Shown here: piece by piece, positions 36,216 through 64,000 of the stretch
Position numbering within the stretch: the first letter of the stretch is position 1
How the letters are laid out: each line of letters begins with the position of its first letter
The notes under the pieces: model-generated
Told to the model about the DNA's origin: nothing
The model's input: only the letters and a program-made list of their open reading frames with translations
The model's database searches: none
Translations under genes and position numbers: made by a program
Assembly: GCA_002104905.1 (NCBI GenBank)
Contig: MCFE01000373.1
Location: 1-64,000 of the forward strand
Length of the DNA: 64,000 bases
Reading direction: 5' to 3'
Source of the DNA: Basidiobolus meristosporus CBS 931.73
Taxonomy: Eukaryota > Fungi > Basidiobolomycota

Positions 36216-39200
36216 ATATGTTCCCTTGATGAGAAGATGATGTTCTTAGATTTGCTGGGCACCGGTTGGGTAGAGTACTTTCATGGAATGGTTCTAGGAG
36301 GGATACATGGAATGTATCATGAATTTTCATACTTGGTGGCAACTGAAGTTGGTACACAATTGCACTAAGTTTCTTCTTGATCTTGAATGGACCTAGTTTC
36401 TTGTAGTCTAATTTGTCACAAGGGCAGCTGGTAGCAATGTTTCTGCTCAAGAGCCATACTAAGTCTCCTTCATCAAGCTTGGGGCTAGGCTGCTGTTTGT
36501 TGTCTGCAAACTTCTTGTACCCCTCATGGGCTAAGGATAGTTCTTGCTTGAGTGTTTCTTGGATTTCTAGAATAATTGACACATGTTCAGCTGCTGGGGG
36601 GCTCATAGGGTTGGTTAGGATCTGAATATCAAATTGCAGATGAAAACCATAATTTGCATAGAATGGGGTGAGACCTGTTGCATGAAGTGCTTCCAGAATC
36701 TTGATATGAACTGGGGCCATCTATCTGATACAACATCACTGGAGATACCATGGAGTTGGAAAATATTCTTGATCACTAAGTGGGTAGTCTCCTTAGCATC
36801 TATGTTCTTTGAGCAGGGAATGAAGTGAGCCAACTTGGTGAGCCAATCTGCCATTACTAGGATTGAATTGAATTTGTTGAATTCTGGGAGGTTGGTAATG
36901 AAGTCCATTGAAATTGACTTCCAATGCTGGTTGGGGATTGGCAAGGGTTGGAGTAGTCCATATGGCTAGGGTCTAGCAGATTTTACATGGTTACATATAT
37001 CACAGGATTGGAGGTACTCCTTGACAAGAGATATCATCTTGATTATTGTGGCTATGGAACTGGTGGCTTGGCTGGCCTTGACTTTCTCAAGGAGTGAGGG
37101 AGCAATAATGCTGGACAACTGGGTGGCAAGGAGCTCAAAGTGTCTTCTGTTGAGTACCAGGTGTTTCATTTGCTGACAGGCATCATCCCCTTCTTCAAGG
37201 GAATACTCCACCTTTCTGGACAGGGCATCAGGCTTTCCCCGTTTTATTCCTGGTCTATAGGTGATGACAAAGTCAAGGCTGGACAGGACAAGGGACCATC
37301 TGGCTTGTCTACGGTTTAGTACTTTTGAGGAGGTAGAGTACTCAAGCTTCTTGTTGTCACAGAAGATCTTATCTTTTGGGCTGCACCATCAAGGTAGGAC
37401 ATCCATTGTTCAAAGGCAACAATGACTGCAAGTAGTTCCTTATCATAGATATTGTAGTTTACTTCAGCTGGAGTAAATTTCTGGGAGTAGAATGCAATAG
37501 GGTGTAGAACATTCTTGTCATTGTACTGGGAACAGATTGCACCAAGTGCAAAGTCAGAGGCATCAGTTTCAGTGATGAAAGGTTTCTCAAGATCAGGGTG
37601 AGCAAGCAGGAGAGCCTATAGGAAGGATTTCTTGATGGAATTAAAGTGCTTGAGCTGTTCCTCATTCCTGGCAAAGGGCAGATTCTTCTGGGTGAGCTTT
37701 GTCAAGGGAGTGACTATCTTGGAGTAGTGGGCAATAAATCTACAATAGAAGCTGGCAGATCCAAGGAAGGACTGCACTTCTTTTACATAATAGGGAGTTT
37801 TCCACAACTGGATGGCTTCTACTTTCTTGGGGTCCATTCTTGTTCCATCTGAGCTGATAAGATAACCTAAGAGCTCAACTTCTTTTGGGTCAAACTCACA
37901 TTTCTCCAATTTGGCATAGTGACCAGCAGTGTCAAGTTTGGTCAAGACTTTCTTGACATGGGAATTCTGTTCTTCTTGTGTCTTAGAGTAGATCAAGATG
38001 TCATCAAGATAGATAACCACAAATTGGTCAAGGAATTCACAGAAGATGTCATTCATCAGGTGTTGAAAGACCGCTGGTGCATTGGTGAGACCAAATGCCA
38101 TAACTTTATACACAAAATGACCATATCTTGTCCTGAATGCAGTTTTGCATTCATCACCAGGCTTGATCCTGACAAGGTTATATACTCCTCTGAGGTCAAT
38201 CTTAGTAAATACTTTGGCAGCAGAGAGTCGATCCAGCAGGGTGTTGATCAGGGGTAAATGGTACTGGTTCTTGATTGTTATCTTATTCAGTGCATGGTAG
38301 TCTACACACATTCTTAGGGTACCATTCTTTTTTTTGACAAAGAGGATTGGGGCACCAGCTGGGGACTTAGAGTGCTGAATAAAACCTTTCTGGTGGTTTT
38401 CTTGAATATAGCCATGGAGTTCTTTCAAATCAGATTGCAAGAGGTTGTAAATAGGACCAAAAGGTGGGGTTCTTCCTACTTCAAGGTCAATGGGACAATC
38501 ATAGCATCTATGGGCTAGGAGTAGTTTGGCTTTCTTCTTGTCAAAGACATGGGCAAACTCTTGATATTTGGCAGGTATTCCATTGGAGGGGGTTCCTTCA
38601 GTGATGATGGGCTCCTGTATCTGGGATAGCTTAGGAAAGGATACTCCTTTACCTGAAAAATGAGGTGGTTTCATGGAGTTGACATGGTGGATTCTGGGGA
38701 ATGTCAGGATTTTGGTCTTCCAGTTATAGCTGGGTTTTGGTTACTAAGCCATGAGCTTCCAGGGACTACGGAGTAATGGGGAGTGTTGATGATGCCTGGA
38801 CAAATGACTGGTCAACAAAACAAGAGGAAGCACCAGAATCTATGAGGGCAAGGACACAGACAGGGCTGGATTCATGGATGTGGATGTTGACAGGTTTTCT
38901 TAAGGACTGGATGGACTTGGTAGGGAATGATATTTCTTGAATGTGCTGAATTTGCATTGGAGGGTCCAGTTGCAAGCCTGTGATTGTAACTGGACATTGG
39001 AGTTTCTCAATAATTCAGGAGAAGATTGCTCACTGGATGATTGCAGGAGCTTGAAGCTGGACCTCTTGTTAGGACAAGACTTTGCAATGTGGCCTGGCTG
39101 GCCACAGTAAAGGCACAGGTTTGCCTGCTGATGTCTAGATCCTTCTTCTTTGGTGAGTTTCTTATATTTAGCACTGTCAATTTGCATAGGATCATCAAGC

Positions 39201-39848
39201 ATGGTAATGGGTGACTGGATTACTGGAGAGGAGGTTGGCTGATAAGTATGTTGGAATTTCTGTTTCTTCTGGAAAAGACATCCACAGGTAAGTCAGAAGC
39301 AGTCTGATAGAACTGTTATGAATAGACACAAGACAGGAGGGTAGAGCTAGGCAAGACAGGACCAGGAAAGGACTTAGGTGTGGATCAACAAGGCAAGATG
39401 TATTTCCAAGGCAAGGCTGTTTATTCAAGACCTGTGTTTATCAGACTGAGGAATAAATAAGGGGGGATAGGAATATAATTACTTTTTGGCAATATGGATG
39501 CCAAGAGATATTGGCTAATTCTAATGGGGTTCTGGGGTGAGGCACAGTAAGTGTGCCAAGATAGAATATACTAAAGAACAGACCAGAATATCACATGGAG
39601 ATATGTCAGGGGTCAGCTGATCATGTAACTAGGTCATCTGACATGTAGTTACCATATATGGCATGGGACAACATAAACTCTAATGGGAAACTTCCATAGA
39701 ATGTTCCATTGTGTAACATTGACTTGGAGCATTCAAGAAGTTGCTAGAATGCAGTGGAACTCTCTAGACAGAACTGGGATTTCTTCACTGACTTGGTTTA
39801 GCTAGATGATTGGAGACCAGGAATGTCATGTGATCATGACATGTAACA
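36215..39848 (-). mobile_element. Ty3/gypsy (chromovirus-like) retrotransposon, degenerate; most of gag deleted, 3' end truncated
   Basis: Putative LTR 39314-39848 (TGTTA..TAACA); zinc knuckle CLYCGQPGHIAKSC; protease ALIDSGAS; RT 37616-38674 (RMCVDY, YLDDILIYS); RNase H (TDASDFALGA, YDKELLA); integrase (ISMDFITNLP, FHVSLLEP). Ty3 domain order. Confidence 0.92.
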
Positions 39849-39999
39849 TGTCAGAAACATGCATGACACTATCTTGGTCCACTGGTACTATCTGCCACTA
39901 AATTTAATTACTAGCCCTAAAGTAAGATCTATACAAAGCACTTATAGTGCCAGATAGTACCAATGGACCAAGATAGTGCCATGCATTTTTCTAACATGC
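39846..39999. repeat. Foldback: about 55-bp imperfect inverted arms (39846-39900 / 39945-39999) with a 44-nt spacer
   Basis: CACTATCTTGGTCCACTGGTACTATCTGCCACTA pairs with TAGTGCCAGATAGTACCAATGGACCAAGATAGTG (2 mismatches in 34 nt) and pairing extends further outward. Confidence 0.85.
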
Positions 40000-40520
40000 T
40001 ACAAGCCACAGGAGCTAGATTCAGAGTGCCATGGTTATTGAGTAGCTGATGCATGTACTCAGCTCTTCTGTGCTCCTACACATTGTGCACAACATTGACC
40101 TATAAAAAAAGGTCAAAAAATGGATTTTCTCCAACACAATGGGTGTAACACAGAGGTGGCTTTGCATGAAGATGCAGAGCTATGTTTCACACTCTCTGTC
40201 CAAGTATAGGTCCACTTGGCCTCCCTGATGCACTATGACATCATTTGGCACTCATGGCTCAATGTGGCACCGTCCAATGGAACAACTCTAATATAGTGCC
40301 AGATAGTGCCATGCACCTTTGTGGCATATTACAAGCTGCAAAAGCTAGATGCCTAGTGCCATGGGTATTGAGTACCAGATGCATGTCTTCAGTCCTTCTG
40401 TCCTCTTACACATCATGAAAAATATTGATCCCAAAAATAAGGTCAAAAAATGGACTTGCTCCCACATGATGGGTGAAGCACAAGGGCTGCTTTGCATGCA
40501 GCAGCAGAACTATGTTTCTA
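39945..40520 (+). repeat. Two diverged direct repeats of roughly 330 bp carrying recurrent TAGTGCCA motifs
   Basis: GCTAGA..AGTGCCATGG.TATTGAGTA..GATGCATGT and AAGGTCAAAAAATGGA..GCTTTGCATG..GCAGA.CTATGTTTC each occur twice about 330 bp apart. Confidence 0.75.
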
Positions 40521-40536
40521 CAATCGTATGATGGGA

Positions 40537-43180
40537 TCATGACGGTGATTTGCTAATTTTACAACCAAATAAAGGTATAAAACTTGACAAGATTTTATTG
40601 GTGGTGTGACAATATTTGCATGGTATTGCTGGGGTCATTTGGTGCTCTGTAACTATTTTAAGTGGATCCAGTTGGCCAGGACTTCCAATTGCCTTATATG
40701 GCAAGAAACTTGACGGTATTATGATGGCTTCACAGCAACCTCTACAAATGCGCACACCTGCCGCAATTGACATGCTTCTACCACCTCAACTTTATAGCTT
40801 TTTAGTGTGATACTTGCAAAGCTGCCATATACCTTGTACTGCTGATAACATATACATCTTGCAAGCATATGCTTGGTTATTGCCACTTATGCCATGAATA
40901 CCTCCTGAATATCCGCAAAGAACTTCTTGGTATTTTGCCAATATATTCCTTCTACCTGCTGGATTCTAGTTCCCTTTATAGGTGTGCTTGGGCCTTTGTT
41001 TTTGTGAGTTCCATATTGAATGGTGTAGAAATTGGCTTGTGACCATGAAAAATCTGGCATACCTAGGTCAAGTTTTCCCAATAAAAATTAGTTGCTTGTT
41101 CCACCCAACCTAACTTTGTACTATTTAACTGATTACCACACATTGAGGCTTCTTAGCTTCTTAATACTGTAGGCATAGGTGTCTCCATGTGCACACTTGT
41201 CCTCAGTATTGTCCAACTCTTTTTGGCTGTCCTCCATGTGCCAACTCATCACATCCATGACAGACACAAAGGTAACATTCTTGATGAGATTGGGGCATGG
41301 TAATACCTGCAACTTGACTGGTCTTCATATATCCCTGTTGTGCATCAACATTTAAAACTTAGCCTACTTCACTCTGTTAGAAAATCTAGTACCCTAACTG
41401 ATTTTCCCTAACCCAGACATAACTAATCTGTGTTATGGTTTATTTTTTCACTTCTCAGAATCTATTTTTAGCTGTTAACCTGATCAATTTTCAAGTGGTC
41501 ATTACTTCCTGAACTCATCTGCTAAGCCTTTCCAAAGGATTAGTCATCTGGGATCCATCCAGCCACTTAGTAGTTGCCAAGACATCAGCTGATTAATGAT
41601 GCAATTTTTCATTTATCTTATGCGCTTATGTAATAATACATACTTTTACACAACAGCATTTACTGTTATCCTGCCAGAAAGCATACAAAACTCATCCAGC
41701 AATAGGTACAAGTAGCTATCCAGGTTGGACGGTGATTTAGGCCCAGATACCAATGAGACTACTATCAGATTATTGCTCTGATACCGTAAGATGGGAGGTA
41801 GATTCAGGTTGATGAGAATCAGTGGCCAGCAGGATTTGCTGGTAGAGTACTTGTTTAATGAGAATCCATGGAGTGCTAAAGCAAAGGCATGGTCATACAT
41901 ACCTTCAAAGTAGCCCTTGCTTCTTAGCTGTTTGTAATGTTTGCCATCAAATATAATGGATGTGTTTGTGCTTGATTGATACTGAGTGTGGTACTCCATA
42001 GCTTTGCAATATATTTTTCACTGCTTCAGCTTCCTCAGTTGTGGCATGACCAAAATATATCCTGAGTGTGAACAATGTTTTCCCTCAATTGTGGTGGATT
42101 CCTGACAATTTGGACATGTTGCAATGGTAGCATTTCCAGATGTGAATGCCATGCAACTGTTAACACATGCTGGAATCAGGATAGTCTCTGGCTCATATGT
42201 TGCCAGTTGCGTGACAGTTGTCCTCTTGTACCATATACATGGTAAGTTGCATTCTGGTATGATTTTGGCAAGAAGTAGTAATAAATCCTTAAAGCCCCCA
42301 TTACTGATATTAGTGGAGATGTGCCACTTCTCTAGCCACAACATTATATCATTCTCCAGTAGATGAATTACTGGGCTCACTTGGCTCCATAAAGCATCCT
42401 TTGCATTTGCTTAAATGGGTGTTGTCTCATTGCATATAGGGATTTGACTGGGCTCATATGTGGTACTGTTGTTAGTGGAGATAGGCTCACAATTAATCAG
42501 TGAACCTTCTTTGTCAGAGCCATCACTCTGTGTGCCATATTCAGAAGGTGGAGGTGAGCCTAAAGCTGTCACAAACTCACTGGACTCAGTTTGTGCAAGT
42601 TGACAAAGATGGCCAGGTGCCAATATAAAAGTATCAACTGGCTGTCAAGATAATGCTGGTACAGTAGTTACCAATGAATGGTCAAATATGACTTAGGTGG
42701 CAAAACACTGGCTATGATCCTTGTAATACTCCTATGCTGTTTGCATGTTTCATGGCTGAGTGGCTTGTCACAATAGCCACATGGTCTTTTTTCTCTTCTC
42801 TTACGGTGTTGAGTCAAAGTAGTCTTGTCCATGGGGCAAACAGTTTGACCTTCAACAACGTAATGCTATTATATCACTTTTTGGTCAATACTCATGTGAA
42901 CTTAAGTCAGTCTTGTATTTGAGACATTGCACCTACATGAATGTAAAATTCAATGATGATCCGTTTATTGTGCAGGATGAATCTGGCACTCTACAGCACT
43001 ATCTGGCAATCTAATTTCTATTTTAATGCCAGTGGTAGGATGCGGTTACTGGTATTTTTACTCAATTTTAATTATGTTGCTCACAACAGTGCTTTTCTTG
43101 CTTTATTTACTCTAGAGAGCTCTCTAGGGACATTCCTCTTGGTGCATACCTTCTTTTATGGATATACTGTGCATTAATAA
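40537..43180 (-). mobile_element. CACTA (EnSpm, Transposase_21/tnp2-like) DNA transposon relic with internal deletion
   Basis: ACVNSCMAF..CPNCQE (42018-42380); ALALHGFS..SCWPLILINLNLPPILRY..VSGPKSPSNLDSYL (41646-41999); C-terminal remnant 40887-41350. Terminal CACTA TIRs not identified. Confidence 0.85.
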
Positions 43181-43189
43181 GTATCTTAG

Positions 43190-45202
43190 CTACTTTGCCT
43201 AATATGAGATTTTCTCCTATATATGACCTTCCACTTTATTTACTTGCCAATATGCTTAATCTCTTTAGATATCCAAATGTACACTGTAGTGGTGTATAGG
43301 TCCAAGGGAGAGATATGCCCAACACTTCTCAGGTGTTTTGTGTGTGGGGTGTTCACTGGGTGCAATAACCTCTGGCAAAAGCTTGCTAGGAATACTTGGG
43401 TTCTGTCTCTAATATCATGTGAAAGGGAATAAAGCCACAAGCTTGTCAAGGGAAAGCTATTGAGCTACAATCCCCAACTTGGTTGGCATCTTAACAAAAG
43501 TATGTGCTGGGTTCAGCGTCCTTTGAGATGACAATCTACTAAAGCTTCCAAAGTCAAAACAACTGTAAACTCAACCAGCAGGGACTTGATAAGAATGCAG
43601 CTGCGGTCAATAGATACAAAGACAGAAAAGTATTTTTGCCTGGACAACAACAAACTTGGGAAAGAGTCAAATATAATAAAAGAAACCTACTCTGAGTATT
43701 CCTCACAAGTAGTGCCTCCAAGGTCAGTTGGCTGTCAGCATGGTTTCCTGGGAGTGTCCTGTGGTCTGGGGTTGGAAGTTCAAGTAGCAGCAGGTAGCAG
43801 TGATCACACTAATCAACAAGTTGGTATATTGATAAAAGGGATGATGATTTATTGTTGAGGGATAGCCTCCCTTATATACTTTTCTTACTGGCTAAGTGAT
43901 TACTAATCATGATGTTCCAGAAGGTTCCAGATATGAATAGAAATCTAAATGACATCATAATGACCTAAGAATGTTCTAAGTAGGTGCTGGAAGGTTCTAA
44001 GAGGCACAGCACATCCAACCAATCAGGAATCAGTACTCTGAAACCTGTGTAACATAGGGATACCATATATGGAATGGAAATGGTAGGGATGGTGATGTGG
44101 GTTGATCAAGTGTCATGGGTACTAGTGTGGGTACTTGCCTAATATAGAAGCACTTATAGCTAGTAATCTTACATAAAGTGAGGGATAACTTATGCAATAA
44201 GGTAAGCAGATGTGATAGTCAACCAGCTTATGGGATAGTACTGATCAGGTAAGACAAATGGGATAAAACTAAAATAAGTGTAGTAGAGATATAGGGAAGT
44301 AGAAAATATGGGAATGAGCACATCTGTCAGTGAGTTTCACTGTCACCCCACTGCAACACTCTACTCTCATTCTGAAATGATCAAATATCTCATTGTAGTG
44401 CTTCAGCTTCCTGCTGAGCACACAATTCCTAGGCTTCCTATGAGCCATGATACATCCTAATCTCTGACAATCCTCTCCTATATAGGCTAAGTCTGCCATA
44501 CATTTCTCCCCTCTACAGAATTCAGGATAACTCCCTACACAGAGTGCTTTGTCATGCCTACTTCCAGCAAATGATCCACTAAGCCAGATGATGTTATCCT
44601 CAATGTCAGACAGTGCTTGGGGCTACACACAATGTGCCTTGTACTTGCCAGAGTAAATGTGCCTCTGCCTGCTACAAGGTCTGTTAATCCTGACTGGGAA
44701 CTGTACAAAATGCTCCTGATATGGAACCTGTTGCTGAATACTCTGCAATACGGAAGTCTATTGGAGGTTCTGATCCTAGTATTCCAAGCTTGCTCTAAGT
44801 CATTCAGACCCTCATATTTATATGGATATATTTACCCTACCTCAGCAATCAGAATATGTTAATTAACTTGCCATGCACTACAATTACACCTCCATCAATT
44901 GCCATTTATCCCGTCTTTATATAGCAAAAATCATCTGCAAGCAATGACTTTGAGATTTTATTGATGATTTACTCTCAAGTCTATAATCAAATGGGAAATC
45001 TACAATGATGTGATCAAATCCATGCCAATGAGTTCTAAGTTGCATCATGCATAATATATGGAAAATTCAACAATTACATCAGTTTTCATACATATTTTAT
45101 AAAAGACCAGGCTGATGCCAATATACTACTGCATAAGTATCCAAATCTATCACTATGAGCCCTATATTGCAGCTCAACTCCTCTGTAGTAGGGCCTGGAC
45201 AA
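43190..45202 (-). mobile_element. PIF/Harbinger-superfamily (DDE_Tnp_4-like) transposase relic, split by a solo LTR
   Basis: Manual minus-strand translation: RINRP..YSGKYKAHC..Q..FAGSRHD..GEKCMADLAYIG..KPRN..YNEIF..RVE, then the LTR, then TFGYLKRLSIL. Removing the LTR and one TSD copy restores RVECTFGYLKR. Outer boundaries approximate. Confidence 0.8.
43285..44355 (-). mobile_element. Solo LTR (1071 bp), diverged relative of the 53655-57271 element's LTR
   Basis: Inverted termini TGTAGTGG..CCACTGCA; perfect 4-bp TSD ACAC (43281-43284 / 44356-44359); reverse-strand homology to the 804-bp LTR (AATCAGGAATCAGTA, GGGTACTTGCC, GGGTGCAATAACCTCTG). Confidence 0.88.
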
Positions 45203-48389: not shown

Positions 48390-49590
48390 TGGTCCTGCAG
48401 GTGCATCCAATCTGAATCAGCCATCTGGATCTTGCAGTGAGGCTGTCAAAAGGCTGATGGCCAAGAACTAATGACCCCCTATTCAGTATTATAACAAGAT
48501 CATGATGGCATTTTGCTAATTTTGCTGCTAAATAGAGTCAAAAGCTTTGAAGTGTTTGAGCTGTCTTTTGAAGAGAATTGCAAGGTATAGTAAGAGACTT
48601 GATGCATTCTATATTTACCTACATGGACCCAACTGGCCAAAACATTGAATTACCTTATATGGAAAGAAGTTTAATGGTGTTCTGATGGCCTTATTGCAAA
48701 ACTTTGCCGGCACTTTAGCAGCAGTACAGTAGCCTACTGCAATTTCTGTATAAGGCTACCATAACAATTTACCAAATAGTATTTTCTTTTTTAGCTCCCC
48801 TTGGGCCTTTCATATGTTCCACTATAAAATCATCCTTCTTTCTTTGCTTACCCGCTACTACCATGGGCTTTCCACATATAGCTCAAATCCAAAAAAATAT
48901 GACATCCTGTGTACTGACCTCTGCATAAACACACACCTACTGCAATTGAAATACTTCTATCACCTCAACCTTACAGCTTTATAGTGTGATACTTGCAAAG
49001 ATGCCCTATACCTTGCATTGCAGGTGGCATTCACATTTTGCAAATGTATACCTGATTGCATCTGCTTTTGCAACCAAAACCTTCTGAATATCTGCAAAGC
49101 ACTCCTTATGCTAATTGCACTCTGGCTTTTGTTTATGAGCACTCTCTATTAAATGGTGTACCAACTGGATTGTAATCAACAGAAAACCGGCATACATTGG
49201 TAAAGTTGTCCTAATAAAATTAGTTGTTTGTTGCATCTGACTTAACTTTGCATTACTTAACTGATTACCCATGCATGGGGGCTGCTTAGCTTCTTGGTGC
49301 CAAAGACATAGGTATCTCCATGTGCAAATCTCTCCTCAAAATTTTCCAGCTCTTCCTGGCTATCCTCCATGTGCCAACTAATCATATTCATACTATACTT
49401 GAATGTTATGTTTTTGATTAGATTAGGATACAACAGTACATTCAACTTGACTTTTCTTACTATCTTCCTACAAATCTGCTTTGTAGGTAACTCCCCAAAG
49501 ATACAGCAAGCCTAGTATTTTCCACACACCAAGTAAGATGGAGTAGAGATTGAACACTGTAGTAGCAAAGATCTACCAGGTATGCATTAT
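48390..49590 (-). mobile_element. CACTA relic, C-terminal and 3' region, interrupted at about 49590 by a Ty3 element
   Basis: Colinear with 62280-63480 and with 40537-41350. Confidence 0.7.
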
Positions 49591-50322
49591 GTCTGTGTTG
49601 TACCTATGAAAAATAAGTATGAAGATCCTATCAAAAGACTATCTGTGGTAATGGAAAGTATTCCATTACTACAATATCTCTAAACCAATATTGCACTCAT
49701 TTCTTTATTTTGCTTTTTTGCTATTGTAACACACAAGTGAAAGATCAAGAATTTCCAACTTTGATGAACAAATGCTCCAGACCCTGACAAGCAATCCACC
49801 CAAGAATTTTATGTCATACAAAACACGTAGTAGCCAACACATGTTTCAAATTACAGCTCATTTAAAGCAGTACTTAAGGAGTTATGACCAAAAGAGTCCA
49901 ATTATTATATATATTATGCCTTATTGCTAGGATTACTAGGGTGACTTTGATTGCATGTAACTTTCAAACCAGCCAATCAAATCACGTGAGATTTTCACAG
50001 GTGCTGCGCCTATGTCCGATCTGCGCCACTGCAAAATTTTAGCTTTGTATAACGTGTATTGCTTGCGCAATTGCCCAAAAACTTTGATCCTTCAAAATTT
50101 TCATATATATGACTTCCCCAGCTGAAAAATAAAGGGAGAGCCTCTCTTTCCAGAATCTCCACACTACAATTACAAGTTTAAAGGTTATAAGACTTCCCTT
50201 GCATCACTTGCACTGTTGAGTATTCTGACTTTGATTGGTACTACATCAGTAAAGAGACTGCAAAGCTCACAAGAATCCAATCTAAGTTCTACAAGAAACT
50301 ACCACTTTTCTGTCGGAAAAGT

Positions 50323-50585
50323 CCCCTCTAAGAAACTCCTTTACTCTAAAGACACCCCTTTAGGCACCCCTTTATTCTAAAGACCCCTTTAAGAAACCCC
50401 TTTACTCTAAAGAAGCCCCTTTAGGCACCCCTTTAGTGTAAAGTCCACTTTAGAGACCACTACAAGAAGCCCCTTTACTCTAAAGACACCCCTTTAGACA
50501 CCCCTTTAGACACCCCTTTAGACACCCCTTTAGGTCTAAAGACCCTTTAGAGACTTCTACAACACACCCCTTTAGGTTAAAGGGG
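50323..50585 (+). repeat. Array of CCCCTTTA-core short repeats in the host Ty3 5' LTR (second copy 53227-53459)
   Basis: 13 CCCCT plus 1 AGGGG in about 265 bp, including (GACACCCCTTTA)x4. The 3' LTR copy has 12 plus 1, with only x2 of that unit. Confidence 0.9.
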
Positions 50586-53500
50586 AGTTCAGAATTTCCA
50601 TATTAGGCAATATTTTCTCAGAAAGTAAAGTGACTTCCAAATAAGGAAAATACTATAAAAGTAAATAAGCCCATTAGTCAACAGAAGGTCAGAACACTGC
50701 TGTAGAAGTGATAAACACTGCCTACAGTATATTTTGAGCCCAAGATTGAGGAAATTAGTGAAAGTTATATCTTCTATTGGTATATCAAACTCCCAATAAA
50801 CTATTTCAGTATTAGCATACTGGAAGTTGTTGTATGTTGTTGATTAGCCTCTACATTGTAGAACAAGCCCCAAACTAATCATAATACAACACAACAACAA
50901 TTTGGTGGAGGACCTGGGTAGTTTGAACCTTTCACTATACAAGCATCAAGAAACGTTACAAGAATGACCAATACACCACTCCCAGAGTTAATAGCCACTT
51001 TTAAAGGTGCCATCCAGTAAAATTCTCAGGAGAGAATGTTACTGAGTTTCTAGAAGAGTTTAACAATATAGCTGCAGCATTTGAGCTATCAAACAAGAAC
51101 AAAATCCACTCTTTCCACTGAGGAGAGAAGTCTCTTTTTGACTATGCTACAATGCTATGACAATGTCTTTGCATTTAATGATGCACAAAGAGGATGTTTA
51201 TCCACAGAGCTATTTCCACTGGTTAAGATCCATACCGTTGAACATACACCATAGGCACTGAGATCATATCCTATTCCCTCAAGATTACTGAACAAAGTAA
51301 TTGAAATGCCACAATCAAGATTTCAAAGTGGAGTCATTGAATATAGCTATGGACCTTATCGCAATCCCTGGTTTACACCGTTGATGAAAAATGAAAGTCT
51401 ACGGTTTATTCAAGACGTACAGCATTTGAATAAGGTCACCATCAAAGATGCTATGCAACCACCCATACAACATGAGTATATTGAGTCATTTACTGGATAT
51501 CCTCTGATTACAACATTGGATCTCTATTCAGGATATGACCAAATACTTCTGGATCCTACCTCAAGAGATTTCACCGCTATGGATACACCAATAGGACTCA
51601 TAAGGATGACAAGAATTCCTCAAGGATGGACAAACTCTGTCCAAAATTATCAACGTGCAATGATTTGAGTTTTGGATGACTGTTTCCCTGAGATATGCTG
51701 ACCATTTCTTGATGACATTGCAGTTAAGAATAAGTCAAGAGAAAAAGATACATCGCATGTCTTACCTCAAGTAAGAAGATATGTTTATGATCACATAAGC
51801 ACAGTTGAGAGGGTCATGAAGAAACTTCAAGCTTCTGGTCTGACTGTATCAGGAGCCAAATGCAAGTTTGGCTACAACAAAGCAATCATTCTAGGTGAAC
51901 TTGTTACTGAAAAAGGGAGATTGCCTGATCCTGCAAAACTTTCATCGGCACTAAATTGGAAGCCACCAAGGAATATTCATCAAGTCAGACAGTTATTAGG
52001 ACTTACTGGTCTATTCAGAATCTGGATCAACAACTATGCTCAAATTGCTAAGCCACTGACTCAGTTATTACAGAAAAACCAGAAATTTGAATGGCATGAA
52101 GAACAGGCAAATGCTATGTCAACATTGCTTGAGTCATTATCAAAGCCACCTGTCTTAGCAGCTATAGACTACAGTGTTATTGATTCACAACCAATCATTG
52201 TATCAGTTGATAGCTCTGGAACTGGGGTTGGTGGAATCATGATTCAAGTTTCAAAAGTTCATCATTGACAACCTTGCAAATATCTCAGTAGACTTTTCAA
52301 AGGGAATGAGCTTAACTATCCATCTATCAAGAAAGAAGCACTGGGAGTACTCTATGTACTCAAAAAGCTAAAGCCATACTTATTAGGAGTACACTTCACA
52401 CTGGAGGTTGATGCCAAGCCATTATTAGGAATGTTGAATAAGTTAGAGCTTTTGCCTGATCCTATTATAGCACGGTGGATATCATACATCCAGATCTTTG
52501 ACTTTACGCTGCAACACATACCAGGAGTCAATCACAAAGGACCTGATGCCTTATCTAGAAAGCAACCAAATTCACCGTACTCAACTGATGATGATGAGAT
52601 TGATGAGTTTCTTGAAAACACTAGTCTTGGATTCTCATTCAGACATATGATACAAAGCAATTATCAACAAATCAAGGAATTTCTTACATCACTCAAAGTT
52701 CCTGCTGATATTCCCACAAATCAATGCAAAAATTTTAAAAAGAAGGCTCTGAAGTTTATACTGCATGATGGCACACTTTTCAGAAAAAGCAAACATGGAG
52801 TTCCTTGACGGTATATACATAACAAGCATGATCAAGAGAAGATCATTCAAGAATTGCATGAATCTGAATCAGGAGGTCATAAGGGAATTACATCAACATA
52901 TGCAAAAATCTCTTTACGGTATTTTTGGCCAACGCTGTACACCAACACAAAAGAATATGTGAAATCATGTATTCCATGTCAAAGAAGAGACAACCAAAAG
53001 ATGCATGAACCACTTCACAGTATATACACATCTTATGCTTGGCAAATTGCACATGTAGATATTATACATTTACCAAGGGCAACAGCTGGGTATAAGTATG
53101 TGGTGGACTGTTGTGATAACTTTACTGGTTGGATAGAGGCTAGAATGCTGAAACAAGCCAATGCCAATGCTCACAAGAATCCAATCTAAGTTCTACAAGA
53201 AACTACCACTTTTCTGTTGGAAAAGTCCCCTCTAAGAAACCCTTTTACTCTAAAGACACCCCTTTAGGCACCCCTTTAGTCCAAAGACCCCTTTAGAGAC
53301 CCCTTTGAGAAGCCCCTTTAGGCACCCCTTTAGTGTAAAGTCCACTTTAGAGACCACTACAAGAAGCCCCTTTACTCTAAAGACACCCCTTTAGACACCC
53401 CTTTAGGTCTAAGGACCCCTTTAGAGACTTCTACAACACACCCCTTTAGGTTAAAGGGGAGTTCAGAATTTCCATATTAGGAAATATTTTCTCAGAAAGT

Positions 53501-54462
53501 AAAGTGATTTCCAAATAAGGAAAATACTATAAAAGTAAATAAGCCCATTAGTTGACAGAAGGTCAGAACACTGCTGTAGAAGTGATAAACACTGCCTACA
53601 GTATATTTTGAGCCCAAGATTGAGGAAATTAGTGAAAGTTATATCTTCTATTGGTGTGGTAGGGTAATCATACCTCCCACAGACAGGTTTATTCATATAG
53701 TCATTATGATATACTTATCCATATTTTATCTTATCAGTATTATCCCATTCTTCTTTTGCCCATATTATCAGTATTATCCCCATATGATGTTTACCCTGAT
53801 TAGTTATTAGCATTAGTTATCCCAGATGTTATTCAGCTTTGTGATCAGTAGATGTATCTATATAAGGCAAGTACCCGCGTCAGTACCCGTGACACATGAC
53901 CTAGGTCTGTGTTACCATCTCTACCATTTCAATACCATATATGGTATTTCTATGTTGCACAGGTTTCAGACTACTGATTCCTGATTGGTTGAGAGTGCTG
54001 TGCCTTTTAGAACCTTCCAGGACATTCTTGGCATATTTTTAGCTCATAGTGATGTCATCAAGAATTCCACTGATACCTAGAATCTTCTAGAACCTTGTCA
54101 TTAGTAATCACTTGGCAATCAGGAAAAGTATTTAAGGGAAAGCAATCCCGCATCAATAAATCATCCCTTCTATCAGTAACACTTCTACCTTATTGATTAG
54201 CAGTTGATCACTGCACCTGCCTTCAACAGTACATCTAAGACCTGCCATCAAGGAGCTTTTCAGGGTAGTGCACAAGACACACAGAGGCCTTTGGAGACAC
54301 TTGGAGCACCTAGGAATCTAGAGAAGCAGGAGCTTTTACCATAGTGACATATTGACAAAGACACCAGCAGTTTAGACACAGAGGTTATTGCACCCATCAG
54401 ACACCTCACACACCTTGAGTTGTGTAGCTTCTCCCAGGAGTACCTCTACACCACCACATATT

Positions 54463-54480
54463 TGGCACCCAACGTGGGGG
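54463..54480 (+). promoter_or_regulatory. Primer-binding site, tRNA-Lys type
   Basis: TGGCACCCAACGTGGGGG matches the tRNA-Lys1,2 retroviral PBS TGGCGCCCAACGTGGGGC at 16/18 positions and starts 5 nt after the 5' LTR. Confidence 0.85.
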
Positions 54481-54532
54481 GTTTGACTGAACTGCCCCTA
54501 GAAGACTTAAGAAAGAACAAATTATCAAGACC

Positions 54533-56389
54533 ATGGATCTACCTTTACCAGGAATGCAAGGAACTCCTTTCTTTGATGGAACCAAAGTTAAAGCTTTCAT
54601 CAAGAGGTGGGAGCTTTTCTGCAGAGCCCACAAAATACCTGAGGCCATTATGGCTGAAGAGATGCCCCCCTACAGCACTGATGAGATCATGCTCTCATTA
54701 TATGAAAGAAATGATCTGCTGACAAATTGGACCCTCTTGAAGAGCTACTTGATTGATGAATATGGAGAGAGACAAGTTGACTACACACTTCAAGACTTGG
54801 AGAACTTTGCTTATAGCAAGTTTAAGCAGCTACCATTGAAAGAATACTTGAGTGGCCTTGAGCAAATTGGAGAGTCACTGAAAGCCCAAGGCATTATCAC
54901 TGATCTGACTTTATCTGCCTATCTGCTCAGAGCACTACCAGAAGGCCTGGTGAGAAGGATTGAAAACAATCCTACTGTGAAAGCTATGAGTTCACTGCCT
55001 GCATTTCAGTTAGCTAAGCAGATTCTACTTGCCCCTGAAGAAACCTCACCAATCAGAAAGCTTCTTTCAAGCCCAGAACAAAACCAAGATAGCCAAGACA
55101 TACTTAATCCCAGCAATCAAAGCACTCAAATTCAGGAGTTGACACAGCAACTAGAGAAACTCTCTTTGCTACTTACCAGCAAAGCATATGGTCAGAAGCC
55201 AGTAGAGAAAGAAGTCAAATATACATGCATGTGGTGTGACTCTGCCAACCACTCCAAGAGAAATTGCCAAGAGCTTCAGTCATTACTATCCACAGGTGAT
55301 GTCCTATATAGTCCTCAGGGATACATAGTCAGTAAGCATGGTGACAAATTATCCACAGCATTTGGACAAGGAGGAATGAGAGTTCACTACAAGCAAGTCA
55401 CCTCTCAAACAAGAAAGGTTCACCTCCATGAAGAAGAAGATCCTGACTACTTTGATCCAGCTGAAGTTCTGAACTTTGACTATGAAGACCCCAGAGAGGC
55501 CCAAGATCATATAGCTTCAATTTATGCTTCAAAGAGACACCATCCTGAAAAAATGGCTAATCTAGGCCCAGCAACAAAAGTACCAAGATGTGAGCCAGAA
55601 GTTGTGATTGAGAAGAAAGCATCACCCCCATTAATTTTACAAGAGTCTACCAAGGCCAACAACTACCACATGCAGCCTAGAGTAAAGCAAAATGGTACCC
55701 CAGAGGCTCTGACAAGTCATATACTAGGAAGCAACATATCAATCAAGGTTGGAGAGCTACTCAGTGTATCACCATCTGTAAGAAAGACTCTGGATGAGCA
55801 TATCAGAATAAGAAAGCATCCAATTGAATCAACTCAAGGCAACCAGGTCAGGACAGTTCAAGGAAGCCAAAATATCAGTAAGCTGCATCAAAGCCAGAAA
55901 CACTACTACTCAGTGGCAACTGCAACAACTACAGGAACTGTGCATAATCAAGAAATCCTATGTCATATAGACAGTGGATCTGAGATATGTGTGATGCCTT
56001 TGGAGGCTTGGAAACAACTACCATGCAAAGACTTATTGCCCATAGACACCAATATCAATTGGAGTATGAAGGATGCCAACTCAGGGCAATCAAAGCTTTT
56101 AGGAATTATTCACAGCTTCCCTCTCATCATTGAAGGAATACCCCATGAGATCCCAGTATTCATATGTGCAAAGGCTAACTTTGAATTACTTCTTGGAAGA
56201 CCATGGGAAGTAAAAGCAAGAGCAACTGCAGTGAACTACCCAGATGGTTCAGCATGGTATACTATATACTCAGAGAGCCCAGGACTAACAGCAACCTTCT
56301 GTGGTGTGGACTCAAACAATATCCGATCAATGACATCATGTAGATTTCTATCTCAAGAAAGGACAGGTGGCTTCATTGAGGAAGACTGA
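54533..56389 (+). CDS. Gag-aspartic protease polyprotein, 618 aa, intact
   Basis: Gag N-terminus (TPFFDGTKVKAFIKRWE); perfect CX2CX4HX4C knuckle CMWCDSANHSKRNC; protease HIDSGSEIC and LLLGRPW; stop 78 nt before the 3' LTR. Confidence 0.92.
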   Translation: MDLPLPGMQGTPFFDGTKVKAFIKRWELFCRAHKIPEAIMAEEMPPYSTDEIMLSLYERNDLLTNWTLLKSYLIDEYGERQVDYTLQDLENFAYSKFKQLPLKEYLSGLEQIGESLKAQGIITDLTLSAYLLRALPEGLVRRIENNPTVKAMSSLPAFQLAKQILLAPEETSPIRKLLSSPEQNQDSQDILNPSNQSTQIQELTQQLEKLSLLLTSKAYGQKPVEKEVKYTCMWCDSANHSKRNCQELQSLLSTGDVLYSPQGYIVSKHGDKLSTAFGQGGMRVHYKQVTSQTRKVHLHEEEDPDYFDPAEVLNFDYEDPREAQDHIASIYASKRHHPEKMANLGPATKVPRCEPEVVIEKKASPPLILQESTKANNYHMQPRVKQNGTPEALTSHILGSNISIKVGELLSVSPSVRKTLDEHIRIRKHPIESTQGNQVRTVQGSQNISKLHQSQKHYYSVATATTTGTVHNQEILCHIDSGSEICVMPLEAWKQLPCKDLLPIDTNINWSMKDANSGQSKLLGIIHSFPLIIEGIPHEIPVFICAKANFELLLGRPWEVKARATAVNYPDGSAWYTIYSESPGLTATFCGVDSNNIRSMTSCRFLSQERTGGFIEED

Positions 56390-57399
56390 GAGAGCACTTT
56401 GTTCCCCAAACTTACAGTGGTTAGCTAAAAAGTTCCCTGAAACTTTTTAGCTCAAGTGGGGGGTGGATGTGGTAGGGTAATCATACCTCCCACAGACAGG
56501 TTTATTCATATAGTCATTATGATATACTTATCCATATTTTATCTTATCAGTATTATCCCATTCTTCTTTTGCCCATATTATCAGTATTATCCCCATATGA
56601 TGTTTACCCTGATTAGTTATTAGCATTAGTTATCCCAGATGTTATTCAGCTTTGTGATCAGTAGATGTATCTATATAAGGCAAGTACCCGCGTCAGTACC
56701 CGTGACACATGACCTAGGTCTGTGTTACCATCTCTACCATTTCAATACCATATATGGTATTTCTATGTTGCACAGGTTTCAGACTACTGATTCCTGATTG
56801 GTTGAGAGTGCTGTGCCTTTTAGAACCTTCCAGGACATTCTTGGCATATTTTTAGCTCATAGTGATGTCATCAAGAATTCCACTGATACCTAGAATCTTC
56901 TAGAACCTTGTCATTAGTAATCACTTGGCAATCAGGAAAAGTATTTAAGGGAAAGCAATCCCGCATCAATAAATCATCCCTTCTATCAGTAACACTTCTA
57001 CCTTATTGATTAGCAGTTGATCACTGCACCTGCCTTCAACAGTACATCTAAGACCTGCCATCAAGGAGCTTTTCAGGGTAGTGCACAAGACACACAGAGG
57101 CCTTTGGAGACACTTGGAGCACCTAGGAATCTAGAGAAGCAGGAGCTTTTACCATAGTGACATATTGACAAAGACACCAGCAGTTTAGACACAGAGGTTA
57201 TTGCACCCATCAGACACCTCACACACCTTGAGTTGTGTAGCTTCTCCCAGGAGTACCTCTACACCACCACATCGGTATATCAAACTCCCAATAAACTATT
57301 TCAGTATTAGCATACTGGAAGTTGTTGTATATTGTTGATTAGCCTCTACATTGTAGAACAAGCCCCAAACTAAGCATAATACAACACAACATATCACAA

Positions 57400-58150: not shown

Positions 58151-58984
58151 TAAAAACAGATGTTGTCCTGCAGGTAATTTCTCTTTGCTATTGTGGAATT
58201 CAACCTGTTGTGAACCAACAGCGTAAATTGGTGAGAGCTGCAGCTTCATTCCTATGCTTCCCTATCTCTGGCATGCTAATACTCTTTTCCTGTTACCTTT
58301 ACCATTATTGTTACCAGGTCTTTTACTCCTACTCAGACTGAGGCATCTGGTATTGCACTACAATTCTTCCTTGATAGGTGCTGCACTGCTATATTTGTTT
58401 TTTCCTGCCTTGCACTTGCCAGCACTCTCCAGGTAACCAGTTATTTTGCTACTGCATGTTTAGAGCTTTAAGCCCTGCTTGTGTAGGCTCCTGAGAATGC
58501 AACTGGTCTTATTACTACCAGATTCTTTACTGGTACTTTGACTGAATTTTTCTTCAATTGAGCTCTGTTCTTTTCTTAATAATCGCTGGACTTAAGGTAA
58601 AAATGCTGACTCCTCGTGTTGTTAGTGAAGTAAGCAGTTAGGAATCTTTGCAGAGCTGCAAGCTGATCATAATTTTCAGGCTGATGCAAATTTAGCCAAA
58701 GCAGTACCTCCTTTCAATTTTCAGTTGTAACTTAATTTCAATCTGTTATGACCTATACAAGTCCCTATACCAAACACTGACCTTAAACTCAGCCTCAAGC
58801 TCAAGAAGTCACTATATTGATATCCACCATTCAATAAGTATTTCAACCATAAATCATTTTTCCGTGCCTTTGGCATCCTAAAACTTTATGCCATTGTTCA
58901 TTCACTGATTTCCATGTATCCAGGTCTTCAGCCAGCACTGTAAATTCTAGCACCTCACTTGACAGTCTTTGCACATCCAACCAA

Positions 58985-59303
58985 TCATGGTTCAGTACAC
59001 TGAAGCCTGTGTAACATAGAGTTACCATATTAAGGATGAAAATGGTAGGAATCATGACACAGATTGATCCTGTGTCATAGATCCTAGTGTAGGTACTTGC
59101 CTTATATAGAAGCACTTAAATCTAGTATTTTTACACAAAGTGATGGATAAATTACAAAATAAATAAATAGGTATCATCATTCGGCAGCTTATGGGATGGT
59201 ACCAATCAGATTACACAAAGGGGATAGAACTAAAGCTAGGGTGGAGGTAAAGAATATGCAAATGGGCAAATCTGTCAGTAGGTGTCACTGCAGCCCCACT
59301 ACA
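58985..59303 (-). mobile_element. LTR fragment of the 43285-44355 / 53655 LTR family
   Basis: Colinear with 44030-44355 (GGTACTTGCCT.ATATAGAAGCACTTA; CAGCTTATGGGAT; end CCCCACTACA). Confidence 0.75.
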
Positions 59304-59618: not shown

Positions 59619-61505
59619 TGTTGAAATAATTAGGAGTCCACCTAATTATTGATATATTATGAACTAGCACTTAGTGAAATGATATATTTCAGATTATCAA
59701 CATGGAAATTAGTTTGTAAGATATTTACTAATTATTAGGAATTTGAGAAGTACAGAATTTTAGGAAAATCTGAAACTTGTCCAAATGAGCTGAAACTTGG
59801 CACATGTACTCCTGAGACTCCCCTAATAATGACCAAGTAGCCACATTTACGTAGTTCTGCAATATGTATCAATACTGTGTTGCAACTCAATAAAACATAA
59901 AGTGAATATCATGTAAATCTTCTAATTCTCCAATTCACTTCCAATATATCTCTCTAATATTTCAACAGGTTATGAGCCCCAAGCTTGCTTTATCTTGGTT
60001 GTCTACTTTGCTCTAGTGCTGTGTCTTTATTCTGGAGAAAGACAGCCTAGTCTACCTGAAGTTACAAAAGACAGAAAAGTACTGCCGCTGCAAAGAACTG
60101 TTAGATGGGATATATTGTTTTAGAGAGAGAGGCCTTTGCCCTTAAAGAAGACACTAAGCAAGGAAAAAGGTCATATGTATGCTGGAAAGTTCTATCAGAA
60201 GTAACAGTGGCTTATCAGAGCCATTATGGTAGATTTACGCAATTGGAAAGTGCCAGATCAGGTTGTACTATTCAAGCACAATAGTACATATGAGACCATA
60301 TCTATCCTGTTTAGGATTAGGCCTCTATGAATAGCTGCCAATCAAGCTGTGGTATCCTGTGATACCAAATCAAGCCTATCAAGATGTAAAGGGAAGATCT
60401 GAATACTGTAACAGGATATCAGTCCAAGAAAGTTATGCCTAGATCAGAAGGATATATATGATCTATCTCAGTCAGTTTTAGAAGGCAGGAAGCACCAGAA
60501 GACGTAGCTTCAGTGGGAGTACCAGATCAGGAATGAAAAAAAGCTAGGCTAGATACCACTGAAGGCACTAGTCCGGAAGAGGAAATACTTGGTCAACCGG
60601 TGAAGAATAAGGCAACTACAATGCTGATCTTTGTTGGTCTCAGCAGATTATATATGGAGTATATGAGGAAAGTTACTATCCAGATTCAGTTATGGATAAA
60701 TGGAGGATAGTCTAAGTGAATTAGACTATAGACCGGAACTGTGGATGATCCAGATCTACTGGAGAGAAGACCACTTCCTAACTTTGCCAATTATTGACCA
60801 ATTTTACTCAAATAAATAACAGCAGATAGCCTGAGAATGCAGCTCTCTGATGATACAAAGTATGCTGGGATTTGATCAGTATCTAAAAAGTTTTACTCCA
60901 ATCAAATTGATGATACTCATTCATAGATACTTGTGATTAGATCAGAGTTCAGACTCAAAGCAATTTGATCTGAAGTATGTAATTAACAGCATGGACCTAT
61001 ACTCAGTTATTACAGATAATATGCTATCCTTAACATTTATTGGAGAATACATTAGTCCAATAGGTTAGATGGTTAATTGCAGGTTTAATTTCAACCGCAA
61101 GATACACAACACCACAGCAAGTTCATAAGTATATGAATATATTATGTGAGTGGGAGTGTTGAAATAATTAGGAGTCCACCTAATTATTGATATATTATGA
61201 GCTAGCACTTAGTGAAATGATATATTTCAGATTATCAACATGGAAATTAGTTTGTAAGATATTTACTAATTATTAGGAATTTGAGAAGTATAGAATTTTA
61301 GGAAAATCTGAAACTTGTCCAAACGGGCTGAAACTTGACACATGTACTCCTGAGACTCCTCTAATAATGACCAAGTAGCCACATTTATGTAGTTCTGCAA
61401 TAAGTTTAAATACTGTGTTGCAACTCAATAAAACATAAAGTGAATATCATGTAAATCTTCTAATTCTCCAATTCATTTCCAATATATCTCTCTAATATTT
61501 CAACA
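59619..61505 (+). mobile_element. Small non-autonomous Ty5/copia-type LTR element (1887 bp), TRIM-like deletion derivative
   Basis: 349-bp LTRs 59619-59967 and 61157-61505 (TGTTGAAA..TTTCAACA, about 11 differences); PBS GGTTATGAGCCC at 59968; PPT GAGTGGGAG; 1189-bp interior without ORFs but with a faint gag trace (WKVL..YQS). Confidence 0.9.
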
Positions 61506-62269: not shown

Positions 62270-64000
62270 TGGTCCTGCAGGTGGATCCAATCCAGAATAG
62301 CATCATAATTCCATCAGGAGACTCACATAATACCAGCAGCTTGGAATTAGTTACCATCTACACAATTGTGTGACAGGATCACCATTGCATTTTGCTAATG
62401 ATAGATCCAAATAATGCTGATAAAATATAACAGTGTTTGTGTGGAGTTTGGCCAAGGGTGGCATAGCATTTTTGCAGTCTTAGTATGCATTATAACCATC
62501 TCAGTGGATCTAACAGGCCAGTACATCCAATAGCCTTGTAAGGCAAAAAACTTAATGGTGACATGATGGCCTCTTTGCGGCCTTTAATAGCATTAACATG
62601 GCTGTATGGCAGCCTACAGCTAGTTCAGTATTATGCTACCATACCATATATCTCACTGTAGAATCACAGCTCCTTATTTGCTTACCAAATGCTACCTTGC
62701 GTATTTCATACATAGTTTAAATCAAAAAATACTAAGGCATCCTGCTTACTAACCTCCACAGATGTGCACACCTGCAACAATTGACGTACTTCTATCATCT
62801 CAACCTTACAGCTTTTTAGTGGGATGCTTGAAAAGTTGCCGTATACCTTGTATTGCTGGTAACATACATATCTTGCAAGCATATAATTGGTTGCTGCCAC
62901 TTCTGACATAAATACCTCCTGAATATCTGCAAAGACCTTTTTGGTATTTTGCCAATACATTCCTTGTCCCTGCTGGACTCTAGTCCCCCTTATAGGTGTG
63001 TTTGGGCTCTTCTTTGTGTGAATTCCATATCAAATGGTGTAGAAATTGGCTTGTGGCCAAAAGAAATCTGGCATATTTTGGTAGAATTATCCCAATAAAG
63101 TTACTTGCTTGTTGCACCCAACCCAACTTTGCATCACTTAGCTGATTACCCACTCATTGATGCTCCTTAGCTTCTTAGTGCCATCAGCATAGGTGTCTCT
63201 ATGTGAACATTTGTCCCCAGTATTTTTCAACTCTTCTTGGCAGTACTCTATGTGCCAACTCTTCACATCCATGATGAACTTGAAGGTAGTATTCATGATG
63301 AGATTAGTATATGTTAGTACTTGCAACTTGACTTGTCTTCCTATCTCCCCACACATCTGCTTCATAGAAAACTCCCAGAAGGTGAAGTAAGGTTTGATAT
63401 TCTCAAGACACCAGGCACAATGGTTCAGTAGATGGATATTGTAGCAACAGAGATCTATGTGCTCAGCTTTATGCTTGTAGTGTAGCAGCTCCAATCCCAT
63501 CATTAACTCCTTGCACCAAAGCTGTAGATGTGTTAAATTGACATTGGTTATCTGCATTGGATAAATATTCCAACAATGTGCATATATGACTCTCAATGCT
63601 TCCAATGTACTTTTGATAGGAATGGCTTCAGAATGCCACTTGAATAAATACACGTCTAGTTCATCCTGTTCTTGCACTTGCATTGTTGCATATGTATATA
63701 AATGTTGATTAGAGCACATGAGAAGTACATTGGATAGCAGATACTCTATAATATCTTGCCATTTTTGTCAGAATTCAATGGTATCTCAAAGGGCTCATTC
63801 AGCTTGAAATGCTGCATATACCATTGGTCATGAGCCTAGGAAATTGTTGAAATGCAAATGCATTGCTTCTTATGGAATGCTTTTGCTACAACAGATACCC
63901 TCTATCTTAAGTAACTCCAGTTTCCCATTAATTCCATATTCCAGCTGATGGTTAGTAACTTGCCAATTCTGCTGCAATTGCATGCTGACTTCTATACATT
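62270..64000 (-). mobile_element. CACTA transposon relic, C-terminal (DUF4218-like) and 3' region, running off the window edge
   Basis: 63138-63719: NIHLLNHC..FTFWEFSMKQMCGEI, a degenerate HLLxH..GP..W.F.MER.CG motif. Colinear with the other CACTA copies here. Confidence 0.78.

Follow-up and report, generated by a model that had tools for sequence, protein, structure and literature searches.

A very young gag-protease Ty3/gypsy element of Basidiobolus meristosporus, probably an internally deleted copy of a full-length relative

The first 64,000 nucleotides of contig MCFE01000373.1 of the fungus Basidiobolus meristosporus CBS 931.73 (assembly GCA_002104905.1, forward strand), referred to below as the window (64 kb), carry a 3,617 bp long terminal repeat (LTR) element at positions 53655–57271, here called G, which is inserted in the downstream (3′) LTR of its host element, here called H, itself older and decayed. 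G is a very recent insertion, and we think it probable that it is a non-autonomous copy of a Ty3/gypsy (Metaviridae) element of B. meristosporus, integrated recently and bearing an internal deletion. It has kept all of its cis signals, namely the LTR ends, the primer-binding site (PBS), the polypurine tract (PPT) and the promoter and poly(A) motifs, together with an intact gag-protease frame. An internal deletion of about 3 kb would have taken the reverse transcriptase (RT), the RNase H and nearly all of the integrase, and would have fused the region after the protease, in the wrong frame, to the final few dozen nucleotides of pol, giving a 19-aa tail and a stop. RT and integrase would then have been supplied by a full-length relative, either in the same particle where template switching made the deletion (a one-off event) or later, in trans, on the deleted RNA (which would give a family). 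If transcribed, G could yield a Gag-protease that co-assembles with the Gag-Pol of its partner, and help, parasitism or interference by G toward that partner are all conceivable.

Structure of element G

The coordinates of G and of the related features around it are collected in Table 1. The two LTRs of G have 0 mismatches in 804 bp, so that the absence of any visible difference between them, reported in the initial annotation of this DNA, holds over their whole length; on the left the identity ends precisely at the LTR edge, on the right 1 nt beyond it. The 5′ LTR contains the motifs TATATAAGG at 53859, ATTGG (the complement of CCAAT) at 53984, GTATTTAAGG at 54128 and AATAAA at 54155. The PBS is 17 nt long, starts 4 nt past the 5′ LTR and occurs a single time in the window, where 0 occurrences are expected by chance; it equals the foamy-virus tRNA-Lys1,2 PBS, TGGCGCCCAACGTGGGG, at 16 of 17 positions, the mismatch being at a CpG (PMC3386198). 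A search of the window for the same PBS with up to 3 mismatches found G alone, and no tRNA genes lie within the window. In every letter the PBS of G is identical to the one published for the coelacanth endogenous foamy-like virus (PMC3386198), and the two have the same G-to-A change at the CpG relative to the foamy-virus PBS; this agreement is probably due to parallel CpG decay or to a common tRNA variant. Both the PBS and the PPT had been described as intact, and both are present at the positions given in Table 1.

Table 1. Positions in the window of the features of G, of its target site and host element H, and of other LTRs of its family.
Feature	Position	Strand	Remarks
5′ LTR of G	53655–54458	+	804 bp, ends TGTGG...CCACA
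PBS of G	54463–54479	+	TGGCACCCAACGTGGGG; tRNA-Lys1,2 type, one CpG difference
Gag-protease ORF	54533–56389	+	Single, intact, 618 aa; homology to gag-pol polyproteins
Capsid-like helical domain	54533–55030	+	Residues ~1–166; AlphaFold pLDDT 85–97; fold matches
CCHC zinc knuckle	55226–55267	+	Residues 232–245, CMWCDSANHSKRNC; motif and alignment
DUF4100-like linker (nucleocapsid-protease)	55640–55816	+	Residues 370–428; Pfam PF13352 E = 4e-5, sub-gathering
Retropepsin domain	55910–56332	+	Residues ~460–600; Foldseek and profile matches
DSG	55970–55978	+	Residues 480–482
LGRPW	56192–56206	+	Residues 554–558
Tail and TGA stop	56333–56389	+	19 aa, unalignable to relatives; left deletion breakpoint about here
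Spacer	56390–56453	+	Pol-like end in another frame; suggestive, stretch short
PPT of G	56454–56467	+	AAGTGGGGGGTGGA; abuts 3′ LTR
3′ LTR of G	56468–57271	+	Same sequence as 5′ LTR
5′ target-site duplication	53651–53654	+	TTGG; uninterrupted paralogous site 50777–50780 also TTGG
3′ target-site duplication	57272–57275	+	TCGG; one mismatch versus 5′ copy
Element H, older, decayed	50261–57391	+	LTR pair and pol remnant
Upstream LTR-like repeat of H	50261–50896	+	Contains uninterrupted insertion-site paralogue
Downstream LTR of H	53165–53654 (left part), 57272–57391 (right part)	+	Split by G
Solo LTR, G family	43285–44355	−	~76% identical, ends TGCAG...CTACA, target-site duplication GTGT
Truncated LTR fragment, G family	58971–59303	−	~75% identical

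G has the features by which Ty3/gypsy (Metaviridae) elements are recognized: direct LTRs that have short inverted termini and end in TG...CA, a PBS, a PPT, a target-site duplication (TSD) of 4 bp (within the 4–6 bp class), a capsid fold with CCHC, and a retropepsin of the D(S/T)G type. An autonomous element has its own RT, RNase H and integrase, and G has none of these; no RT or integrase matches were found inside it, and only 78 nt separate the stop of its open reading frame (ORF) from the 3′ LTR. Since these enzymes are absent, G cannot make or integrate cDNA with enzymes of its own, and the first description of it as a capsid-encoding unit without replication enzymes is correct. Its identical LTRs, PBS, PPT and TSD show that the DNA of G is a cDNA inserted by integrase. 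No other ORF of at least 150 aa belonging to a transposable element (TE) at 30–64 kb is more than a fragment, which agrees with the earlier remark that the G ORF is the only undamaged TE ORF of the region. Assignment of G to the non-coding LARD (large retrotransposon derivative) or TRIM (terminal-repeat retrotransposon in miniature) classes was considered and rejected, as an intact 618-aa ORF fills its internal region.

The LTR family to which G belongs is represented in the window by two further, diverged copies, a solo LTR and a truncated fragment (Table 1), both of which keep the LTR ends and a core resembling a promoter (TATA, CCAAT complement and AATAAA, at LTR positions ~200–355); a long-lived family with older, diverged LTR relatives, as had been proposed, is thus present. 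The solo LTR lies inside a decayed PIF/Harbinger-type transposase remnant (44356–44604, minus strand; DDE_Tnp_4 E = 0.0018, below the cut-off).

The Gag-protease protein and its relatives

The 618-aa ORF is unbroken and has the CCHC and DSG motifs that had been noticed in it. Sequence matches and structure models together indicate that its protein is a Ty3/gypsy Gag (capsid and CCHC), followed by a DUF4100-type linker and then by a protease. Pfam gave sub-threshold matches only (DUF4100, and Asp_protease with E = 0.016), and the DUF4100 family (PF13352) is also matched in four related proteins (P0006–P0009). The AlphaFold model of the whole ORF has a mean predicted local distance difference test score (pLDDT) of 76 with a confident retropepsin domain, which Foldseek matches to the retroviral-protease-like domain of DDI1 and to HIV protease with E down to 4e-8; an alignment profile likewise matches DDI1 and also, with E = 1.8e-7, the protease of Ty3 Gag-Pol. 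In a separate model of residues 1–300 (pLDDT 85) the top folds in the PDB are the dArc1, PNMA2 and Arc capsids; these matches are weak (E 0.016), but they rank consistently, with a target TM-score of up to 0.65. Across an alignment of 37 sequences G retains all of the nearly invariant positions (C232, C235, H240, C245, D480 and G482) as well as the clade motifs. As matters stand, G is of value mainly to annotation, in that the gag, DUF4100 and protease regions of the zoopagomycete gypsy clade are poorly caught by Pfam.

HMMER comparison of the G ORF with about 15 billion proteins (sequencing-run assemblies included) gave 679 matches at E ≤ 1e-3, of which 7 were at E ≤ 1e-30; the best E value was 4.6e-41, the long matches are 24–31% identical and the short ones at most 51%. 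The top relatives are from Smittium culicis, S. simulii and Furculomyces, and a 95-aa fragment from B. ranarum is 40% identical to G residues 19–106. Two relatives, P0006 (S. culicis OMJ17852.1, 1,407 aa) and P0011 (from sequencing-run assembly ERR14656589, 1,656 aa), have RVT_1 and RNase H downstream of the stretch matched by G, and P0011 also has integrase domains; the Furculomyces relative PVU87237.1 and an S. culicis locus, L003, are also among the full-length gypsy relatives of G. The gypsy elements of Harpellales/Kickxellomycotina share with G the layout Gag-CCHC-DUF4100-protease and the motifs F.G (N-terminal), C.YCD..H..R.C, EL..SP..RK, D(S/E)GSE and LGRPW. They are 24–31% identical to it and carry, after the protease, RT, RNase H and integrase in the same polyprotein, whereas G stops where their RT linker begins.

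Relatives of about the size of the G protein were considered as possible gag-protease-only elements and were rejected, since they are gene-model fragments of full elements. At locus L003 (S. culicis LSSM01000760.1) RT, RNase H and integrase lie downstream in other frames, and at locus L004 (S. simulii MBFR01000277.1) patchy RT and integrase matches lie downstream; the gag-protease parts of these LTR elements are the annotated proteins OMJ27956.1 and PVU90090.1, labelled "Peptidase A2 domain-containing" or hypothetical. A word-index protein search with the 618-aa ORF gave no match in the 340–1080 aa range, and neither the G ORF nor two TE ORFs next to it had an exact protein match on record. 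Because these exact look-ups were empty, the TE ORFs of this assembly have no gene calls, and their absence is therefore uninformative on copy number. A back-translated scan of the metagenomes of the Joint Genome Institute (JGI) gave 128 pattern matches with 0 relatives of G among them, a metagenome scan with an exact 26-mer of the G protease gave 0 matches, and tblastn of the G ORF against the window found no second gag-protease copy.

The end of the ORF and the internal deletion

G aligns well with its full-length relatives through ...DGSAWYTIYSESPGLTATFCGVDSNNIRS (about residue 600), after which the relatives enter a linker and RT. In comparisons with P0001 (S. culicis OMJ18467.1, another full-length gypsy relative), P0004, P0006, P0011 and P0018 the G tail does not align beyond about residue 600, and pLDDT is below 50 at residues 603–616. 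In a different frame, positions 56425–56475 hold a last run of 16 codons, LKSSLKLFSSSGGWMW followed by a stop, which crosses the G-rich PPT and stops in the first 8 nt of the LTR. This frame ends with ..LKLFSSSGGWMW and a stop, and the pol frames of P0011 (..NRLKIF...SQLRGDM, stop) and P0006 (..NRLKRYF...SSQGGEMS, stop) end likewise. The likeness is suggestive, and on it the spacer appears to hold the final pol codons in another frame; the position of the ORF stop would fit a chance outcome of a frameshifting deletion rather than design. The initial annotation had the ORF end cleanly 78 nt before the 3′ LTR, of which the distance stands and the cleanness does not, given an unalignable 19-aa tail and a pol-like, out-of-frame spacer. 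Since the LTRs of G are identical there has been essentially no time for decay, and the intact ORF is therefore uninformative on selection for the deleted form.

Could the deletion have arisen where G now lies? A full-length autonomous copy might have integrated and then, through illegitimate recombination at the site, lost its RT, RNase H and integrase, in which case G was never mobilised in its deleted form. A deletion of this kind is evident nearby in H, which is cut inside its integrase and fused there to the downstream LTR without a PPT, so that the truncation of H is not a product of reverse transcription and must be an in-place deletion. In G, on the other hand, both breakpoints leave every cis signal intact, and 0 differences in 1,608 nt of LTR leave very little time for a 3-kb deletion. 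Deletions during reverse transcription are, moreover, frequent in retroelements. We consider in-place loss unlikely.

Insertion site and age

Repeat analysis found that the flanks of G (53417–53654 and 57271–57391) are contiguous in a repeat copy at 50543–50896. The empty paralogous target there, at 50777–50780, contains CTATTGGTATATC; this uninterrupted copy reads ...CTTCTATTGGTATATC... and the filled site reads ...CTTCTATTGG (element) TCGGTATATC... The uninterrupted paralogous site shows that G made a true 4-bp target duplication. The TSD had been called intact, which is right insofar as there is a real duplication and is not right in detail, for the two copies are TTGG and TCGG. A TSD of 5 bp was tried and is ruled out by ATTGG versus TCGGT, and 4 bp is usual for the LTR family of G, as the solo LTR is bordered by perfect GTGT copies. 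Most simply, the mismatch would go back to a target TCGG whose left copy later decayed from CpG to TpG, as in the paralogue; a consensus error is another possible source.

The LTR pair of H has 15 mismatches in about 605 aligned columns (2.5%), plus indels, as compared with 0 in 804 for G, and G is therefore much younger than H. Perfect 804-bp identity would also be expected if assembly collapse or polishing had produced, as an artefact, the identity of the LTRs or the shortness of the internal region, and in that case the TSD mismatch could be a consensus error as well. We regard such an artefact as very improbable. PacBio was used to sequence B. meristosporus CBS 931.73 (PMC7466969), so that reads span G, which is just 3.6 kb long; its unique flanks join up exactly at the empty paralogous site, with 4 bp duplicated, and its internal region is one continuous ORF.

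CpG depletion

The initial annotation had described the ORF as almost CpG-free, and it has in fact one CpG in 1,854 nt (observed/expected 0.012), with 23 AGA/AGG arginine codons versus 1 CGN. From about 32 kb on, however, the window is a transposon cluster in which CpG observed/expected is 0.04–0.16, with TpG and CpA in excess, as compared with about 0.72 in the host genes of the left half, and CpG loss is a trait of the entire TE compartment and not of the G ORF alone. The base composition of the cluster would fit methylation-driven CpG decay confined to transposons; repeat-induced point mutation (RIP) was considered and ruled out, as the depletion is CpG-specific with TpG and CpA excess. The scarcity of CpG in the G ORF reflects a long stay of the lineage in a CpG-decaying compartment, and this history of CpG decay may wholly predate the deletion. 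The boundary between the two compartments is sharp and lies at about 30000–32000, where CpG observed/expected goes from about 0.75 in the gene-dense half to 0.04–0.16.

The compositional difference between the TE cluster and the host genes also bears on domestication. A gag-protease architecture with an intact ORF is what a domesticated host gene of the PEG10/RTL type would have, and G and these genes are alike in encoding Gag (capsid and CCHC) and then a retropepsin. PEG10, by contrast, is a host gene, conserved and single-copy, that lacks LTRs and makes its protease via a −1 frameshift, whereas G is a genuine insertion with one continuous frame. A PEG10-like gene was rejected on the identical LTRs and TSD and on the lack of a close homologue in any genome; the PBS and PPT, the nesting of G in a TE cluster of such low CpG content, and the lack of an orthologue of more than 51% identity in B. 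ranarum or any other genome likewise speak against a host gene, and we give domestication next to no chance.

Origin of the deleted form

The initial annotation had proposed that G represents a maintained gag-protease-only lineage that makes its own particles, borrows RT and integrase and acts as parasite, helper or interferer. Such a capsid-encoding satellite would have spread through many cycles with its Gag-protease under selection, building particles alone or jointly with an autonomous partner. Since G is very young and has no structural flaw, either the deleted form or its parent was active not long ago; the conserved Gag and protease residues are all intact, the termini and promoter core are conserved across a long-lived LTR family, and GAG/PROT-only families are known in plants (PMC13570524). 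Each of these observations would suit such a lineage, but the ORF is expected to be intact at zero age irrespective of selection, and the CpG depletion is compartment-wide. In addition, a single gag-protease copy was seen in the window, its junction is out of frame with an unalignable tail, the relatives of gag-protease size are pieces of full elements, and no protein among the roughly 15 billion is more than 51% identical. Taking these together, we think a maintained lineage quite unlikely; as it stands, G is on present evidence an ordinary deletion derivative. Other deletion derivatives adjoin it, namely H, which is without gag-protease, and a 1.9-kb non-coding LTR pair at 59619–61505.

Several points weigh against our preferred reading of G as a recently integrated, internally deleted copy. 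A full-length partner with the LTR ends or PBS of G was found neither in the window nor in the protein and metagenome collections searched, and for this reason we can only infer the source of the RT and integrase that G used. Its PBS was typed by comparison with the published foamy-virus PBS, and the remnant of the pol terminus is too short for statistics. Finally, the TSD copies differ by 1 base while the 1,608 nt of LTR show no difference; homogenisation of the LTRs by gene conversion would also fit this mismatch and would make G older than it appears.

Comparison with known non-autonomous elements

Gag-only non-autonomous elements have been described in plants, as the initial annotation had stated: TR-GAG elements in Coffea, Arabidopsis and Triticeae, and 28–29 GAG/PROT-only families in sugar beet (PMC13570524). 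Like these, G has LTRs, a PBS, a PPT and Gag (with or without protease) only, without RT, RNase H or integrase, and is partner-dependent. The plant elements are multi-copy families, some with a traced partner, whereas of G a single copy was seen, in a fungus that diverged early, and no partner was found; and where the classical TR-GAG has gag alone, G also has an apparently intact protease. Family-level features aside, G fits the TR-GAG/GAG-PROT class in structure. Many LTR elements with incomplete pol genes are reported in fungal surveys (PMC3248453), and in the literature searched we found no description of TR-GAG-like families in fungi.

G may also be compared with pairs in which the non-autonomous member is a deletion derivative, since in these too the cis signals are retained and the enzymes of a partner do the copying. 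RIRE2/Dasheng and MusD/ETn are autonomous/non-autonomous pairs of which Dasheng and ETn are non-coding; G, unlike them, is coding. In barley, BARE-1 and BARE-2 form an autonomous/non-autonomous pair by internal deletion, in which BARE-2, as cited in PMC13570524, is without Gag and has kept pol. G is the opposite of BARE-2, with Gag-protease kept and pol gone. By analogy with p22 of Ty1, a Gag-derived product of G might interfere with particle assembly, although in full-length Ty1 an internal transcript gives rise to p22, an N-terminally truncated Gag, and nothing comparable was seen in G.

Repeats have been reported to make up less than 8% of the B. meristosporus genome (PMC7466969). The transposons of this fungus are barely described, and G is a clean, datable case of recent LTR-retrotransposon activity in it. 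Should further copies share this junction, they would form the first GAG/PROT-only family that we have found reported for fungi and would extend the plant class, and they would offer a tractable natural test of whether a capsid from a defective element is a help or a hindrance to the partner.

Element H and other neighbours

H has a gag start stub (50965–51117) and a decayed RT, RNase H and partial integrase (51105–53171) that is 70% identical in amino acid sequence to P0011; the gag-protease part that it lacks corresponds to P0011 residues ~52–709. Its PBS, TTTGGTGGAGGACCTGGGTAG, is common to another locus, L001. G and H were considered as complementary halves of one family, and this was ruled out, as their LTRs and PBSs are unrelated and the gag-protease of P0011 is 24% identical to that of G. 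The LTRs of H carry imperfect tandem repeats of about 27 nt, based on CCCCTTTAG, at 50330–50560 and 53230–53450, and most of the indels between the two LTRs are due to the different numbers of repeats in the two copies.

The LTR pair at 59619–61505 has 349-bp LTRs that are 97% identical and have the ends TGTTGAAATA...TATTTCAACA; no clear TSD was found. No coding homology was detected in the ~1.19 kb between these LTRs, and the pair looks like a TRIM/LARD-like non-autonomous element. A decayed gypsy-type element at 35781–41335 (minus strand) and also at 62751–63996 has an RT fragment (37352–38494) and an integrase SH3 fragment (36214–36720); LTR-like segments of the 35781–41335 element recur at 48811–49575 and 62645–63996, and its family differs from those of G and H.

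The host genes in the first 30 kb of the window encode two O-fucosyltransferases, a C2H2 protein, two UNC-93/MFS transporters and an FAD oxidase. Two pairs of these are neighbouring paralogues, the O-fucosyltransferase genes at 2198–5622 being divergent and the UNC-93/MFS genes at 19890–26800 lying on opposite strands.

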